64,000 nt of DNA from Rebecca billardiae RCC1528 (GCA_965240325.2 OZ251231.1:1860001-1924000), one strand, 5' to 3'. Positions 27,254 to 58,760 are shown, counted from the stretch's first letter. Made by a program: numbers and translations. The notes: generated from the sequence alone by a model not told the origin.

Positions 27254-27725
27254 TAGTGGGGTCAGAGCTCCGACCGTTACACTCCCGAGTGACACAATCT
27301 CCCGAAATCTCGAAATATGAAATATCTCCTGGCGGAGTTAGACTTAGTCGAGTAACTGTTTGATTCCGCCGTTTATTAAGTTCGTTTTTAAATTAGGACT
27401 TATAGTAATTCCAGGCGGTGTAGAATCCGCCTGTGCCAATCAAAATGTGATCTAGACGGTGCGATTCTGGTGCAAATAGCGAGATCACCTTGGAGATCGT
27501 GTATCTCCCCTACTAATGTTTCCGAGATCGCGTCGAGATTGAGGTCGTATATATCTCCAGTATGTGACATTTTTATTCGCTAAAAACTTGTCCGGCGTGA
27601 CCCAGCTCATTTCAGATTTTCAGGCGAATTATTGACATCCCGAAGTTTGAGAACCTCATCTCAAGACGACAGGAAGTTGGATTTTATTGGGCCACGCACC
27701 CCCCAGTGGGGCTCTGACCCCTCTA
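27254..27725. mobile_element. MITE / non-autonomous relative of the 52021-58150 transposon
   Basis: TIRs TAGTGGGGTCAGAGC ... GCTCTGACCCCTCTA, AT-richer non-coding interior, and subterminal gacatcccgaagtttgag resembling gatatcccaaagtttcag of the large element. Confidence 0.8.
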
Positions 27726-50497: not shown

Positions 50498-51705
50498 ATG
50501 GCACCGAAGCGTGCGCGCGCGGGTGACACGGCAGGCTCGGACGTGGCGCCATTCGGCAAGCACGGGAGCGAGGCGGTGCGCCTGATCACGCTGCGCCTCG
50601 GCCGGATGACCGTGAAGGTCTCAACGTTTGGCGCCACAATCACGTCGCTTGCGGTGCCGAGCGCGCTCGGCGAGCCGACAGAGACGGTGCTCGGATTCGC
50701 CGAGCACAAGCCGTACGAGAGCTGCCCCTACTTTGGCTGCACGGTCGGGCGCTTCGCCAACCGCATCGCCAAAGGTAGCTTCACCCTCGAAGGCAAGCCC
50801 ATCCAGCTGCCGGCGTGCAACGATCGCGGCAACCACCTGCACGGCGGCGCGCGCGGCTGGGACAAGCGCGTATGGGAGCTGGTCGAGGCGAGCGCGACCG
50901 CGTGCACCCTCAAGCTGCGCAGCGAGGACGGGGACGAGGGGTACCCCGGCAACGTCGACGCCACCGTCAGCTTCACCCTCGAGTGGCCCTCGCAGATCGC
51001 CATCGAGTACGACCTCACGACGGACGCGCCCACGGTGGTCAACCCGACCAACCACTCCTACTTCAACCTGTCGGACGGCGGCGCCACGGACGTGCTCGAC
51101 CACGACTTGATGGTGTTTGCGGACAAGTACCTCCCAACCGATGCCACGTGCATCCCGACGGGCGAGCTCAAGCCCGTGAGCGGCCCGATGGACCTGCGGC
51201 GCCCAACGCCCATCTTCCGCGGCATCCACGCGGCTGACGGGGGCAACGGCTATGACCACAACTACGTGCTCGCGGCGGAGGCCGGTGCGCACGAGGACGG
51301 GCGCAGGCTGCGTCGAGCCGCGTGGGTGCGCTCGCCCAAGACGGGGATCGAGCTGCTGGTGCTCACCACCGAGCCCGGTGCGCAGCGCCGCGCCGCGTGC
51401 GCGCTGGCATGCGCGCCTGCGCTCACGGCCTCGCGGACGCCCTGCCCGCCCTGCTGACCGCCGCCGCCGTGGCTCGCGTCACAGGCATCCAAGTGTGCGC
51501 CAGCAACCACCTCGACGGCACGTGCACTGGCCACGCCGGCCGCGTGTACGGGCCGAACGCCGGCCTCTGCCTCGAGACACAGCACTACCCGGACTCGGTG
51601 AACCACGCGCACTTCCCCTCGACTGTGCTCAAGCCCGGGCACGTCTTCAGCTCGCGCACCGTGTACGCCTTCTCGGCGAGCGCGAGCTCGACCGAGCACG
51701 CGTAG
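50498..51705 (+). CDS. GALM: Aldose 1-epimerase (galactose mutarotase); intron 51378-51484
   Basis: GRFANRI, NHLHGG, GYPGN, NPTNHSYFNL, GYDHNY, spliced TTEPG|IQV, CLETQHYPD. Confidence 0.93.
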
Positions 51706-52020
51706 CAAGCTGGTATTGAGCGGCGGCGGCGCGAGCGGTGCGAAGTGCCCGTCCAGCGCGACCTGGCAGCCTCCAGAAGTCGAACGCAAACGCGGCGCCA
51801 CTCACGGCCCACGGCCCACTGCCAGCCAACTCGGGGCCAGGGCGCATGCGCCCGCGGCTGGCAGCGCCGGAGCGACTGCGAGTGCGAGACGAGAGAGCGG
51901 GCAGACAGCTAGCAGCGGCGCGGATCGAATTATTCGTCCGGCCGGCTGCGCCGTGCCCGTGATGATCGAGAGTAGTGATGTCATCTATATAGTCTACACT
52001 CAGTGATGGCCCGCGGTGCA

Positions 52021-55000
52021 TAGCGGGGTCAGAGCGATTTTTTGGCTAAAATAAAATCGAAAATGTTGCCGTTCCTCGCCCCATTTTCATTTTGCGCCTC
52101 GGCCGGCGCGCGGCGACCGGAAAATCCCGAGCGCGTCGGCCGGCGCACCTTCGGACGGCTCAGGGGGCTTGATGGCCTCTGGACGGTCAGGCCCGACGCC
52201 GCGCTCACGCGGCCGCGCGCGCCGCAGCGGCCGATGGCGCCAGAGCGGGGCGGTCTGGGGGAAGGCCATGGCCCTACCGGACTCCCCAACCGCCAACGGC
52301 TCTTTGCCACAGTTCAAATTTGAACGCGCGCGCGCACATCTTCAAGAGCTGCTGAGATGGTGGCGATGCAGGTTGATGAGGGAGCTCCCAGTTCAGGTGA
52401 CGCGCGCGCGATGCGGATGCGTTCATGTGCGTTCAGGGTGCTCATCGGTGAGGTTGACCCAGCCCTCGTCTCTCTCCTCCGTGCGCTCACTCCCCACCGC
52501 CCCGCGCGCGCTCGCGCGCTCGTGCGTCCGTGTCGCCGTTCGGCGCGCAGGCGCGAGCACGAACGTGTCGGCGTCTGTGCGGGTCCTCGCTGACCCGGAG
52601 GCGGTGCGGTTGCTGCTCATCGACGCAGATGCGCGCCGCCAGCCCACCAACTTCCCCGAGATCGAATCCCTCGAGCTCCCGCGCGACACGGTGCAGCAGA
52701 TCAACACGATCTTGTCGGAGGGCGAGCTCGGCAAGTTCTTTATCTCGAAGGCCGAGGGTAAGGAGCTGACGCAGCTCGGCAAGGACAACATCTGCAACAA
52801 GAAGGTGGCGTTCGGCTTCCTCATGGCGCGCGCGCTCGGCATCAAGCTCGAGCTGCCGATCGCCGGCGCGCGCGAGCACTGGTCGACAAACTGGCAGGAG
52901 ATTCTCGAGGCAGCCGGCAACCGCGTGACGAGCAAGCTCGGGCACTGGAAGCAGAAGGCGAAGTCGAAGCGCCAGAAGACCGGCTCGAAGACGCAGGCGA
53001 CTTCGTGCTCCGCGGACGAGACGCTCACCGTGCTCAGGTCCTGGTTCGACCCGGCCGCGCCGGCCGCGCGCGCGTCCACGAAGGGCAACAACTTCTCCTG
53101 CGAGCAGCCGCAGCAGGCCGAGATCCTCGCGCTGCAGCAGAATCTCGTCGAGGCGCAGCAGGCGCAAAAGATGACCGCGTCCAAGCTCGACGCCGCCGAG
53201 ACGAAGGCCGCCGAGCAGGAGAAGGCGCGGCGCGCGGCGAACTCGCGCTTCGGCACGGCGGTGCAGGAGAAGATGGCGGCCGAGCAGGCGGCGGCTGCTG
53301 CGGAGGCCGGCGAGCAGAAGGCGAAGGCGGAGCAGGAGGAGGCGCGCGCGCAGGCGGCGGCGGCCAAGCAGCTCGAGGTGGCGGCCAAGGCGAACCTCAC
53401 CGTCGTGAAGAAGGAGCTCGCCTCCAAGGAGAAGGAGGCCGCGGCGGCCGAGCGCGCGCGCGCAGCCGCTGTCGTTGCCAAGGAGAAGGTGGTGACCAAG
53501 CTCACGAAGGAGGGCGAGAAGCGCGAGGCGAAGATGACGCAGCTCGACGACAAGGTGCGCGAGCAGAAGGCCAAGCTGGACGAGTCCAAGGTGATGCTGC
53601 GCAACCTCAACACGGAGCTCCTCCGGGTGGCGCGCGCGCGCGCGTCGGAGGAGCAGGCGGCCAAGAAGGCCGCGGCCGACTTCCAGCTGCAGCTGCGCGC
53701 GGTGCGCGAGGCGCACGAGGAGGAGCTCGCGAAGGCGATGGCGGCCGAGGCGCAGGTGGAGGGCCTGGGCGCGCGGAATGCCGCGCTACAGCAGCAGCTC
53801 GACGCGCGCGCGGCCCTCCGCCACGGCGACGGGCTCCGACTCGAGCTCGAGCGGAAGACGCAGCAGCTCGCCGACGCGCGCAACGCGCTCGCCGGCGCCG
53901 AGCGGCACCTCGCGGCCGAGCAGAAGGTGGCGTCCTCGCTGCGCTCCGAGCTCAAGCTGCAGAAGACCGCTTGCAGGCAGGCCGAGGCGCAGTCGAAGGC
54001 GCTGTCGGACAAGTTGAAGGAGCTCCCGGGCGCCGAGCCCACGGACTACGTGAGCTTCGACGACCTCGACGCGCAGGCCGCGGAGGAGAAGGAGCAGCTG
54101 CTCGCGGAGTTGGCCGAGCAGCGCGCGGAGGCCGCCGCGCTCCGAGTCAAGCTGGGCAAGAGTGACGCCGAGCTTGCCAAGTACAAGGCGATCGCGGAGC
54201 CGCCCGAGTCGCGCTTCTACTCGCGCAACCAGGGGGGCTACTACACGCTGCCGCTGCAGCTGCTGTGCCTCGTCCTGATCACGTACGGCGTGAGCACGGC
54301 CAATGTCTCAAACGTGATCACGAACGTCGCTCTCTTCCTCAAGGTGCAGCTGCCCACCTACACGCAGCGCACGGAGAGCGGCATGTCGAGCGTGCAGCGC
54401 GTTCGGCTGCCGTGCGAGAGCACTGTCAAGGAGATCACGCACAAAGCGTGCATCGTGGACGACCTCTCGCACGCGATCAAGGAGGAGAAGCGCATCCTGA
54501 GCGCCTACGAGAAGGGCATCGACCCGACGCTCGACTCGGGCTTGAACGGCACGACCGACGGCGCGACGAGCGGCAAGGTCGACTTCCAGGCGATGACCCT
54601 GAGATACGATGGCGAGGAGAAGAGCCGCGTGGTGTGCCTCAAGCCGTGCGCGTCGGGCACCACGAAGAAGAAGGTGGAGCTCATCACCGAGTCGCTCAAT
54701 GACATCAAGGAGGTGGCCGAGGCCTGCCGCAAGTCCTGCACCGATCACTGCTTCAACGACTACACCAACGCCCAGATCGCCGCGCTCGTCAAGGTGAACG
54801 GCTTCACGACGGACAAGGGCGGGGCCGACTTTGCGCTTTCCAAATCCGAAGCCATGCAAACCGCCAAGCGCGAGGCGCTCCATCTCGTCCTCGGCCGCCG
54901 CCACCTCGCCACCGGCCGGGTGCTGATGATGCGCGTCTCGCCGGTCGCCGGCCGCACGGCTCTCGTCGAGTGGAAGGCGCTGCCGACGCTCGCCGCGACC

Positions 55001-58000
55001 GAGGCCAACATGCTGACGAGCCACCTGCGCGAGCGGCAAGTGACGGAGATCGTGACGACGGCGGTGAACCGGCTGCTCGCGGAGCGGCCCAGCTTCTCGC
55101 GCCACGCCGTGCGCGGCTGCCTCGCGCTCCTCATCGCCGACGTGGCGGAGGAGGTCCACGAGCGCGGCGCCGCAGGCGACGGCGTGCTGCAGGCGGCGCG
55201 CCCGCGCGTCGACGGCGGCGCGTCGATCGACTTTGACGAGGACATCAACACGTACCGCGAGAAGGTGCACCTCGACGAGGCGCTGGGGTACGCGTTCGGC
55301 GCCGCCGGGGGCGCGTGCCTCGCCGGCGACGACGCGATCAAGGCGATGTCCGAGGCGCTGCTCGACCACCACGCGTTCATGCAGGACGTTGCCGACCGCA
55401 AGGCGGCGCTCACCGACGGCTCGAAGCAGCTGCCGGCGACGGACGAGCAGGCGACGGCGATCGGCGCGTTTCTCATCGGCGGCATGTCGGCCGAGGTGGT
55501 CAAGCTCGCCCTCAGCACCGAGCACGAGTACTGCCACGAGCACGGCCTCGTCAACACCACCAAGTGGGCCGAGGACGCCGTGTCGGCCTGGCTGATCGAG
55601 AAGATCGGCACGGAGACGCTCGAGCAGATGGCCGCGCTGCAGGGCGACAAGCGGAAGACGAAGGCGGACAACGCGACGAAGTGGAAGACGTGCGTGGGCT
55701 ACTACAAGGCGCCGCTGTGGCACTTCATGTACCGCACCGTCACGCTCTGCAACAGCTACGGGCGGAATGAGAACGGGCAGGGGGTGAAGTACCGTTCTCA
55801 TCTGGTCGCCATCGGCAAGCTGGACAAGCACGGCTTCTTCAACCACCAGCTCTTCGCCAACATCTGCGGTAACCGCGATCATATCTTCTGGGTGAGCGCC
55901 TCGCGCGGCGCGCGCGCGTGCGCGCGGCGCGCGCGCGTGCGCGCGCGCGCGCGCACGTCCACCGTCCTCGCCCTTACGCCCGCCTGTCCCCGCGCGCGGT
56001 GCGCGCGCGCAGTACGAGTGCGCCGTGTTTGTGAACGAGCGCGCGAACCTGATCGACTACTTCGAGTCGTGCATCGCGTCGGACGAGGGGGCCTGCTCGA
56101 CCATGAAGTACTGCCTCGCGATGGCGAAGAACGAGCACGTCTTCAAGGCCGCGGTCGTGTGCGGCGCGCTCTACTACGCCTTCACGCTGCCCTGCATCGC
56201 GGGCCACGAGCACCTCAAGGAGGAGGACGGCTCGCTCGACCGGCGCAAGATCCGCGTGTTCGACCAGGCCGTGTTTGAGAAGCTGGTCGACTGGGAGGAG
56301 AACACGCACAAGCTCCTGCTGGGCGACAAGTTGCTCGAGGGGCAGCGCACGAATCCCGAGCTGTTCAACATCCTCGCCAACATCCAGACTCGTGTCCGCA
56401 GCGGCGGCGATGAGATCACCAAGCTCGACCCGGATGCGCTCGAGCTCGCCAAGCAGGTCGTGAGCTCGCTCGCGAGGGGATACCACCACTACCACAAGGA
56501 GTCGATGCGCCTCCCGTACGGCGTGGCGCCCGGGGACGAGGACTTCGAGCAGAAGCTCGCCGAGTTTAAGAAGGCCGGCGGCGGCTCGCACCTCGACCTC
56601 TCCGACGCCCAGATCCGCCGCGGGCGCACGATGGAGCCCACGTCGAAGGCGTCCGAGCGCGTGTTCGCCATCAAGAAGCGCGTGCGCATGCGCGCCATCA
56701 CACGGTCGCTGCTCACGATCGCCGGCCTGGCGCGCTGCGCGCAGAACGGCTCGGCGCTCGAGCTCTTCCTGATGGTGATGGATCTGCCCGTCGAGAAGAT
56801 CGAGGCGTACGAGCGCGTCATGCAGTTAGTGCGCCGTGCTCGCAAGGCGAGGGAGGGCGGCGCGTTCGAGCAGGCGCTGTCGCTCGGGAACGTGCAGCTC
56901 GCGCTGCGCGAGGCCAAGCTGGCCAAGCGCGCGCAGGCGGCCGAAAAGCTCATGGAGCTGAAGGCCAAGCTGAACGCGCTGCGCGGCGAGTTCGGCGCGC
57001 CCTCGTGGGCGCGCATCAAGGAGTGGGCGGAGACGCGGGCGAACGACCTGCTCGACCTCGTGCGCGCGTTCGCGAAGCTCGACGACAAGGACGTGCGCAT
57101 CAGCGACGCGGCCAACAAGCTCAGCCGGCTCCAGCTGCTCGTGGAGCTGTACGGGCTCGAGGTGCCCGCCGCCGAGCTCGACGCGGCGGCGGGGCGGAGG
57201 TGGCGCAACGTCGGCGACGGCGCACGCGGTGCGCGGCTCCCTTCCGAGCTCGCGGACGGCCGCCTCCGAGGGCTCGGCCGGGACATGTGGAAGCTCGAGC
57301 GACTCTGCGGGGCGATGACGCGCGACGGCGTGCGCCTCTACCTCGCGCGCTGGCTCGGCGAGGGATGGGACGAGAGCCACGACCAGCTCCTGACCTTCCG
57401 GCAGCTGTGCGCAAAGGACAAGGCGACCGGCGAGCTGATCCTTCCGTGCCCCGAGATCCAGGCGGAGGTCGAGCAGTACGACGAGATCGCCGACTCGGAC
57501 TGGCCGCTGATCACGGCGATGGAGGCGCGCGAGCAGGCCGCGCGCGAGCAGCAGCTGCAGCCCGGCGCGCGCGTCTGCTGGATGCCGAGCCGCGAGGAGG
57601 ACTTCACGGCTGGCGAGGTCGTGGCGGTCGGCCCGCGCGACGGCGAGGTGCGCGTCCGCCGTGACGACGACGGCAACGAGTCCGTCCTGTCGCGCGACGT
57701 CGTGCTGAGCTTGCACTCGCTCGAGCGCACCCTCCACGTCGGCGACCGCGTGCGCGCGGCCGTGGAGGATCAGGACATATGGTTCTACGGCGAGGTCGCC
57801 CACGTGGACGAGCGCGGCGAGCTCATCACGCTCACGTACGACGACGACGAGGTCGAGACGAGGCCCGAGTTCCGCATCCAGTGCCTCCGCAGCGCCGCGG
57901 CCTCGGCTGGCGAGCAGCAGGCACGCCGCGGCAAGCGCGGCCGCAGCAGCTGAGCGAGCCCCCAGGAGCGCGCGCGCTTGGCGCGCGTGCGCGCGTGTAC

Positions 58001-58150
58001 ATCATTTAGCTACTCCCGACGCTGTCACGCATAGCAAATGGTCCCACTAGACCCCTGATCGATATCCCAAAGTTTCAGAGCCAGAGTGCCAGTGCTTCAG
58101 GTACCTCGTCAGCTCGCCGCGACGGTCACAGTGGGGCTCTGACCCCACTA
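52021..58150 (+). mobile_element. Putatively autonomous DNA transposon (hAT-like DDE), 6130 bp
   Basis: TIRs TAGCGGGGTCAGAGC and GCTCTGACCCCACTA (14/15 match). Perfect 9-bp TSD CGCGGTGCA at 52012-52020 and 58151-58159. One large spliced ORF inside. Confidence 0.88.
52357..57953 (+). CDS. ~1773-aa hAT-like transposase: coiled coil + DDE core + chromo-like + two Tudor-like domains; introns 52397-52550, 55892-56012
   Basis: TTDGATS (D at ~54557), TTDKGGAD (D at ~54812), YCHEH (CxxH at ~55532), PTSKASERVFA (E at ~56655). WKLERL..YLARWLG is chromo-like; PGARVCW.. and VGDRVRA..WFYGEV..LTYDDDEVE are Tudor-like. Introns are frame-consistent GT-AG. Confidence 0.78.
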
Positions 58151-58484
58151 CGCGGTGCAGGGCGGAGCGCGTAGCGAATGGAGCCCCGCCGGGCCCGGGG
58201 GCCCTCACTACGTTGTCAAAAAGATCTTTTGATCAAAGAAAAGGGGATGGGGGACGATTTTGAGGGCTGTTGGAGGGTGAGTTTTCGACTTTTTGAGGGG
58301 GGGTATGCTGTCCATCACAGCTTAAAAGGCCGCGCCCGCTGCAATTCTTGTATCTACTATGGACGGACGTGGGATCACATACCCCGGGGGTGAAACAAGT
58401 GAGTATTCCTATCCCTCTTGTATGCTGAAGTACGAGTTTGCCGAGCGACGTTTGATTGTTTTGGGTCGAAAACAGCTATGAAGC

Positions 58485-58760
58485 CAGATTCTTTTGAATA
58501 GTGCTTGTTCAAATACGTTATCCGTCTGTCTCGATGGATGAACCGCCTCGTCATATTAAAAGAGATTCTTTTCAATAGCGCTTGTCCAACCAAGTTACCC
58601 GCATGCCTCGATGGATGCACCTCCTCATAATATTGAAAGAGATTCTTTTGAATAGTGCTATTTAAAGCCAGTTACCCGCTTGCCTCGATGGATGAACCTC
58701 GTCCTGTGCCATAAGCCCATAATGAAAGAGAGGCGCTTGTGAAAACAGGTTACCCGCCCG
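58485..58760. repeat. Degenerate ~76-bp tandem repeat (3-4 copies) in an AT-rich patch
   Basis: Recurring agattcttttgaatagtgc ... gttacccgc..gcctcgatggatgaacc. Confidence 0.7.

Follow-up and report, generated by a model that had tools for sequence, protein, structure and literature searches.

The question raised by a 64,000-nucleotide (nt) stretch of the genome of Rebecca billardiae RCC1528 (GCA_965240325.2 OZ251231.1:1860001-1924000; this whole stretch is called the window below) is whether it carries a cut-and-paste transposon whose transposase is joined to histone-reader domains. A preliminary annotation made from the DNA alone (the sequence-only reading) had pointed to a giant hAT-like transposase gene in the window. 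We found that the coding part at 52357-57953 sits inside a larger unit, a complete DNA transposon of 6.1 kb at 52021-58150. In our judgement this unit is likely to represent a rare family of cut-and-paste transposons and to be intact and probably autonomous, encoding an enzyme of the aspartate-aspartate-glutamate (DDE) type that resembles hAT transposases and whose histone-reader tail would bias insertion.

We analyzed the ends of the element and identified inverted repeats of 15 bp (TAGYGGGGTCAGAGC), the two members of the pair being identical at 14 of 15 positions; the family end sequence can also be written TAGNGGGGTCAG. The repeats were abutted on both sides by identical 9-bp copies of a target-site duplication (TSD), in agreement with the earlier claim that the element was bounded by terminal inverted repeats (TIRs) and a TSD. 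An 8-bp TSD was rejected for this copy since the flanks agreed at 9 bp only, and at neither 8 nor 10. The ends are short, read TAGCG and TAGTG and fit 5' YARNG, which is the signature of hAT ends. The end pattern occurred four times in the 64-kb window against 0.25 expected, and two of the four occurrences bounded a miniature inverted-repeat transposable element (MITE) of 472 bp that lies 24 kb from the large element. The right ends of the MITE and of the large element share their 24 leading nt, with at most two mismatches. The MITE was flanked on both sides by GGGTCTGG, 8 matching bp with the left copy offset by 3 nt, so that its TSD could be read ambiguously as 8 or 9 bp. Taken together, the large element and the MITE are organised like an autonomous TIR transposon with one derivative, and the window contains only one copy of the large element. 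We also noted that the terminal 22 nt of the right end (58129-58150; reverse complement TAGTGGGG TCAGAG CCCCACTG) were nearly palindromic, with an 8-bp stem (7/8 pairs) and a 6-nt loop. The right end of the MITE (27704-27725) had the same property and the left ends did not. At about 58043-58055, in a subterminal position, the end motif recurred in part as CCCACTAGACCCC.

Two long plus-strand open reading frames (ORFs), 52169-56278 and 56025-57953, were joined via an intron at 55892-56012, and the predicted spliced product had 1790 amino acids (aa) without an internal stop. The sequence-only reading had described one spliced protein of ~1773 aa; the single predicted protein was retained and the length was corrected. 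From ~52551 on, the coding sequence had a G+C fraction of 0.95 at third codon positions (GC3) versus 0.43 at second positions (GC2) in every segment, and the GC3 of the neighbouring host gene was 0.91. The codon usage of the reading frame is host-like. Exon 1 had no clear codon periodicity or GC3 signal, and because of this absence it is only tentatively placed. An unspliced N-terminal extension from the ATG at 52172 was rejected since codon periodicity was absent before ~52551.

Relatives of the predicted protein were scarce. In word-indexed searches of 5.8 billion proteins nothing came up apart from the ORF calls of the window itself, while an exhaustive phmmer search with the N-terminal core against 1.84 billion representatives identified 8 relatives. 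One metagenome scan was blank and another found two contigs, L003 and L004. These searches suggest that the family is very rare. Three relatives were read in context: L001, which encodes P0007 and comes from a JGI sample; L002, from the Logan assembly of SRR30872631; and L003 (LKMJ01015789.1), a contig from the brine metagenome of a hypersaline soda lake, whose accession was traced to PMC4766312. They were 24-39% identical to the window protein. Four relatives within this range of identity shared the layout of the window protein, which in P0007, L002 and L003 ran from an N-terminal coiled coil through the core and a further coiled coil to a chromo-like segment and the Tudor-like barrels. Positions 95-6622 of L003 form a complete homologous element with a protein 31% identical to ours. 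Its inverted ends, TAGGGGGGTC(G/A)G, were much like those in the window, and no TSD was recognisable in its flanks. Since this soda-lake contig carries the element, the family is also present in an uncultured eukaryote of that habitat. The ~180 residues at aa 32-211 of the window protein (52553-53090) had coding periodicity; we found neither relatives nor Pfam matches for this part, and P0007 is without it altogether.

The relatives also bore on the joining of the two ORFs. Intron 2 followed the same (I/V)FW codon as the GT..AG introns of L002 and L003, and four fragmentary relatives (P0004, P0005, P0006 and P0010) broke off by read-through at this position. The intron was absent from L001, in which P0007 is an uninterrupted ORF of 1619 aa (4.9 kb) on a 5336-nt contig. 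P0007 aligned across the junction, with aa 1001-1392 of the window protein matched in one piece. The candidate catalytic glutamate motif, the chromo module and the Tudor modules are all encoded by exon 3, and because they share this exon the link between transposase and reader domains is independent of splicing. Intron 2 itself consisted mostly of (CG)n and a 19-bp GC-only repeat (55902-55954).

The predicted core had been described as carrying D..D..CxxH..PTSxxSERVF motifs in hAT order. All four motifs were found, and they were conserved in the relatives covering each site, apart from an H to Q change in the CxxH motif of P0008 (Table 1). Across the family the glutamate motif reads (A/S)E(R/S). 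The order D, D, CxxH, E is that of hAT transposases, and S-E-R-x-F-S is the signature of their C-terminal block. When the first 346 aa of exon 3 were used in an ESM Atlas feature search, the ten best named clusters were all Dimer_Tnp_hAT with a score of 0.85 and few shared features, a result that on the calibration of the tool counts as a lead rather than as evidence; with the N-terminal core the Atlas gave no usable match. The motif order of this ~1790-aa protein and the ends of the element appear to resemble hAT more than any other kind, and the hAT-like label would hold at the level of motifs only. The motifs and the ends speak for that earlier label, and the lack of a Pfam or PDB sequence match, the 9-bp TSD and the lack of a BED finger speak against it.

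Two further features of the protein might serve in oligomerisation. The long coiled-coil-like region upstream of the core was found likewise in P0007, P0009 and L003. The second is found within a stretch inserted after the second D and before CxxH. We modelled the core with AlphaFold on residues 300-1200 of P0007, since the window core is split by an intron; the alignment covered the N-terminal half only, as MAFFT misplaced the exon-3 fragments in every mode. The sole confident part of this model was residues 250-400, which fall in that insertion. The family profile of the segment at 55220-55378 matched the N-terminal extension of Chlamydomonas flagellar enolase (7n6g) with an expectation value (E) of 5e-4, and we tentatively suggest that it may be a docking helix pair of the Dpy-30/RIIa type. 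A possible second pair of this kind was seen at 55022-55171 in the same insertion of ~240 aa.

The first module of the tail is the chromo-like segment, which had been predicted at ~57285-57410 and was located over the span given in Table 1. The aligned segment of L002 passed the Pfam Chromo model (PF00385) with 31.2 bits against a cut-off of 25.1 (E 2e-7). A four-sequence family profile searched against PDB matched only chromodomains, led by CDYL2 (1e-5), MPP8 (2e-5) and LHP1 (7e-5), with further matches to HP1, CBX, Polycomb, Rhino and CMT. The window segment alone matched only the MPP8 chromodomain, and weakly (E 0.05-0.14). As judged from these comparisons, the chromodomain appears clear at the family level and weak in the window copy. 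Alignment with MPP8 placed W1569 and W1591 at the first two positions of the methyl-lysine cage and E1594 at the third; since E1594 fills the third position, the cage of the window copy appears to be incomplete. The corresponding residues were W/Y/F in P0007 and S/W/Y in L002. We folded the last 267 aa with AlphaFold using two relatives as the alignment, and in this tail model the chromo segment had three strands and helices at residues 49-111 with a predicted local distance difference test (pLDDT) score of 66-80; fold searches of the tail model did not reach this segment.

The same model had two five-stranded barrels after the chromo-like segment, at the place where two Tudor-like modules had been proposed (~57553-57890). 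VIA-align placed barrel 1 on the TDRD3 Tudor domain with Z 8.6 and a root-mean-square deviation (rmsd) of 1.8 Å over 54/55 residues, and on the TDRD3, PHF1 and SMN Tudor domains with Z 7.4-8.6 and rmsd ~2 Å over nearly the whole target. The two barrels together aligned over 107 residues with the tandem Tudor of 53BP1 (Z 7.3-7.4), although a Z near 8 is common among small barrels. The top Foldseek matches of the tail were tandem Agenet/Tudor histone readers (E 6e-4 to 1e-2; template-modelling (TM) score by target up to 0.5), namely AGDP1, ADCP1, NtAGDP3, BAHCC1, 53BP1, SGF29 and SETDB1, and the nearest ESM Atlas cluster was SGF29_Tudor (TM 0.55). By sequence, the barrel region matched Pfam DUF4537 weakly (E 0.002), and the family profile led, again weakly, to PSHCP, SGF29 and KDM4A. 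These models support a Tudor fold for the two barrels. By eye, barrel 1 has RRDDDGN where the 53BP1 type has FDDGY and most of its cage aromatics are gone, and in barrel 2 the cage aromatics W, F, Y and Y are retained. The structural and sequence neighbours of the tail span readers of H3K9me, H3K27me, H4K20me and H3K4me.

Table 1. Coordinates of the large element, its predicted gene and the related MITE, counted from the first letter of the window.
Feature	Position	Strand	Basis or remark
Left TSD copy CGCGGTGCA, 9 bp	52012-52020	.	abuts left TIR directly
Left TIR TAGCGGGGTCAGAGC	52021-52035	+	end-pattern scan of window; similar end in relative L003
Exon 1 (tentative), ATG + 30 codons, donor GTGAGG at 52448	52357-52447	+	open joined frame
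Intron 1, GTGAGG..CAG	52448-52550	+	predicted from sequence
Exon 2: N-terminal region, coiled coil, core with D, D, CxxH	52551-55891	+	GC3 0.93-0.96, relatives
Coiled-coil-like region, aa 212-576	53093-54187	+	74% A/E/K/Q/L/R, 305 proline-free residues
Candidate catalytic D700 (TTDGATS)	54557-54559	+	D in 5/5 relatives covering site
Candidate catalytic D785 (TTDKGGA)	54812-54814	+	D in 6/6 relatives covering site
Dpy-30/RIIa-like helix pair in D785-CxxH insertion	55220-55378	+	family-profile match
CxxH motif C1025/H1028 (CHEH in YCHEHGLVN)	55532-55543	+	C 7/7, H 6/7 (Q in P0008)
Intron 2, GTGAGC..CAG, 121 nt, phase 0	55892-56012	+	same position in L002, L003
Exon 3: core C-terminal half, second coiled coil, chromo-like module, two Tudor barrels, stop	56013-57953	+	
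Candidate catalytic E1359 in PTSKASERVF (56637-56666)	56655-56657	+	E in 4/4 relatives covering site
Chromodomain-like module, degenerate in window copy	57276-57485	+	family profile, L002 Pfam match
Tudor-like barrel 1	57549-57731	+	VIA-align on TDRD3 Tudor
Tudor-like barrel 2, tandem with barrel 1	57732-57890	+	Foldseek, VIA-align, ESM Atlas
Right TIR, reverse complement TAGTGGGGTCAGAGC	58136-58150	-	partner of left TIR
Right TSD copy CGCGGTGCA, 9 bp	58151-58159	.	abuts right TIR directly, identical to left
MITE (non-autonomous element), 472 bp	27254-27725	.	ends TAGNGGGGTCAGAGC as in large element, interior unrelated

With regard to the setting, an aldose 1-epimerase gene (50498-51457; Pfam E 3e-65) stops ~500 bp upstream of the element, and the insertion is therefore gene-proximal. 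A 77-bp tandem repeat (2.8 copies and a degenerate fourth) lies at 58486-58698, ~330 bp beyond the right end.

By analogy with Hermes and the chromoviral integrases, from which we infer catalysis, oligomerisation, histone binding and targeting, the element might work as follows. The N-terminal part of the protein would bind the TAGYGGGGTCAGAGC ends, and the long coiled coil together with the Dpy-30/RIIa-like motif would allow the protein to oligomerise. The D/D/E site would cut and rejoin DNA, with the target cut staggered by 9 bp. The chromo and tandem-Tudor tail would hold the transposition complex on nucleosomes carrying a particular methyl-lysine mark, and tethering to such nucleosomes may bias landing sites in the way that chromodomains do for chromoviral integrases.

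A number of observations weigh against a reader-guided, hAT-resembling transposon. No Pfam transposase family was matched by any piece of the window protein or its relatives, and PF05699, the hAT C-terminal dimerisation family, gave nothing in the window, L002, L003 or P0007 at E up to 10. PDB sequence and family-profile searches with both halves of the core returned neither Hermes nor any other transposase, and among the 8 phmmer relatives there was no ordinary transposase or hAT. An N-terminal BED zinc finger, which is common but not universal in hAT, was absent from the Pfam scans. The TSD is 9 bp versus the 8 bp of hAT, and CxxH follows the second D by 240 aa versus about 20. The AlphaFold model of P0007:300-1200 was unusable (pLDDT 42.8), Foldseek and VIA-align results on it were noise, and because of this the RNase H-like fold, which in hAT is interrupted by an all-alpha insertion domain, is only putative for the core. 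Pfam called no chromodomain in the window copy, the third position of the chromo cage is E and not Y/F, and the tail model as a whole was only moderate (pLDDT 58.7). The insertion site, near the aldose 1-epimerase gene, is not obviously heterochromatic. Finally, the splicing of the gene model, intron 2 included, is a prediction and its expression is putative.

Some of these points bear on the purpose of the tail. The tail may not steer integration at all and could instead allow escape from silencing by recruiting or mimicking host chromatin proteins, bind nucleic acids, or assemble the complex. The apparently incomplete chromo cage would be in keeping with such a role, as would the gene-adjoining position of the single insertion in the window and the presence among the structural neighbours of nucleic-acid-binding barrels, namely a PWWP domain with single-stranded DNA and PSHCP. 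However, the best structural matches were the methyl-lysine readers AGDP1/ADCP1, BAHCC1, 53BP1 and SGF29, the chromo profile matched readers of H3K9me and H3K27me only, and the tail has been kept in four relatives whose identity is 24-39%. Chromodomain-guided targeting moreover has a precedent in the chromoviruses (cited in 10.1101/2021.11.30.470311). We consider a non-steering tail rather unlikely.

The points against hAT affinity raise a different possibility, namely a cut-and-paste transposon with a transposase from a different DDE superfamily, such as the Mutator-like elements (MULEs), or from one yet to be described; the hAT-like motifs would in that case be convergent or ancestral in the wider hAT/MULE/P/Kolobok group. 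A TSD of 9 bp falls within the 9-10 bp of MULEs, which also have a DDE transposase with CxxH. The failure to match any hAT hidden Markov model, PDB sequence or phmmer relative, the long insertion between the second D and CxxH and the missing BED finger are consistent with this possibility. On the other hand, the glutamate motif of MULEs is ES.N, and the SERVF that follows a (P/A)TS stretch in our protein fits the hAT consensus far better. The ends of the element are short and begin TAG.G, whereas MULE ends are usually long. The ESM Atlas lead was to Dimer_Tnp_hAT only, and Pfam MULE was not matched either. Another superfamily thus seems unlikely. A stronger version of our own reading, that the element founds a deep and undescribed eukaryotic DDE lineage, sister to or outside hAT, in which a combinatorial histone-mark reader and oligomerisation modules place insertions in defined chromatin, is possible and is put forward tentatively.

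The two remaining alternatives are poorly supported. That the element is immobile, being either dead or a gene domesticated by the host with its transposon ends retained, might be argued from its single copy in the window and its degenerate chromodomain, but the perfect TSD, the near-identical TIRs, the intact ORF with all candidate catalytic residues present and the nearby MITE with matching ends make this improbable. An erroneous gene model, with the 3' ORF as a separate chromatin-reader gene inside the element, is very improbable; the predicted status of intron 2 would favour it, but it was rejected because this ORF opens with 350 aa of transposase sequence conserved in the relatives, the E motif included, P0007 is continuous across the junction and the position of intron 2 is kept in three genomic loci (window, L002 and L003).

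We compared the preferred reading, a hAT-resembling transposon with a reader tail, with the systems nearest to it. Like the hAT elements Ac, hobo, Hermes and Tol2, it has short YARNG TIRs, MITE derivatives and a single transposase with D, D, CxxH, a long helical stretch and E in S-E-R-x-F. Unlike them, it has a TSD of 9 bp rather than 8 and a protein of ~1790 aa rather than 600-900, an insertion of ~240 aa between the second D and CxxH, neither detected Pfam hAT or Hermes similarity nor a BED finger, an N-terminal coiled coil of 365 aa, and a C-terminal chromo module with two Tudor modules. Chromoviruses, which are Ty3/Gypsy long terminal repeat (LTR) retrotransposons such as MAGGY, likewise join a mobile-element recombinase to a C-terminal chromodomain. 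The chromodomain of their integrase guides insertion into chromatin methylated at H3K9 (Gao et al. 2008, cited in 10.1101/2021.11.30.470311). Our element encodes a DNA transposase and has a tandem Tudor pair downstream of its chromodomain, and its targeting is putative.

Closer precedents exist for each module separately. Gypsy-10_Ec32 of Ectocarpus was presented in 2025 as what its authors call the first reported transposable element (TE) with a Tudor domain (PMC12477816). Its protein also ends in a Tudor domain, but it is a retrotransposon of the Gypsy type and has one Tudor domain only, whereas ours is a TIR DNA transposon with a chromo module and two Tudor barrels. Fusion genes of hAT and Chromo have been described in the sponge Ephydatia muelleri, along with the recruitment of reader domains by TEs in general, in a passage of a chromatin-protein survey (10.1101/2021.11.30.470311). 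These fusions, like our protein, join a hAT-type transposase to a chromodomain reader. As far as the passage describes them, and compared by description only, they differ in combining CBX/CDY-type chromodomains with canonical hAT, as recognised by Pfam co-occurrence, and the passage reports no Tudor, coiled coil, TIR/TSD or MITE evidence for them. A full-text literature search did not find a DNA transposon with a chromodomain and tandem Tudor domains. The sequence-only reading had held that this architecture was not known among hAT elements; the literature search agreed with this for the combination of chromo and tandem Tudor, but hAT-Chromo fusions had already been reported. Because both these fusions and a Tudor-carrying Gypsy element were on record, we regard the element as a new variant and not as a new category.

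Reader-guided integration is well documented for LTR retrotransposons, while for cut-and-paste transposons only a handful of domain co-occurrences are available. The element described here is anatomically complete, with its ends, TSD, MITE, intact ORF and conserved tail, and would offer a clean system in which to study the choice of target by histone marks in a DNA transposase. With it, the range of hAT-like transposases known from poorly studied algae would become wider. Should it prove to represent a deep DDE lineage with its own reader, it would be the first case of its kind among DNA transposons and would provide a natural template for inserting DNA at chromatin-defined addresses.

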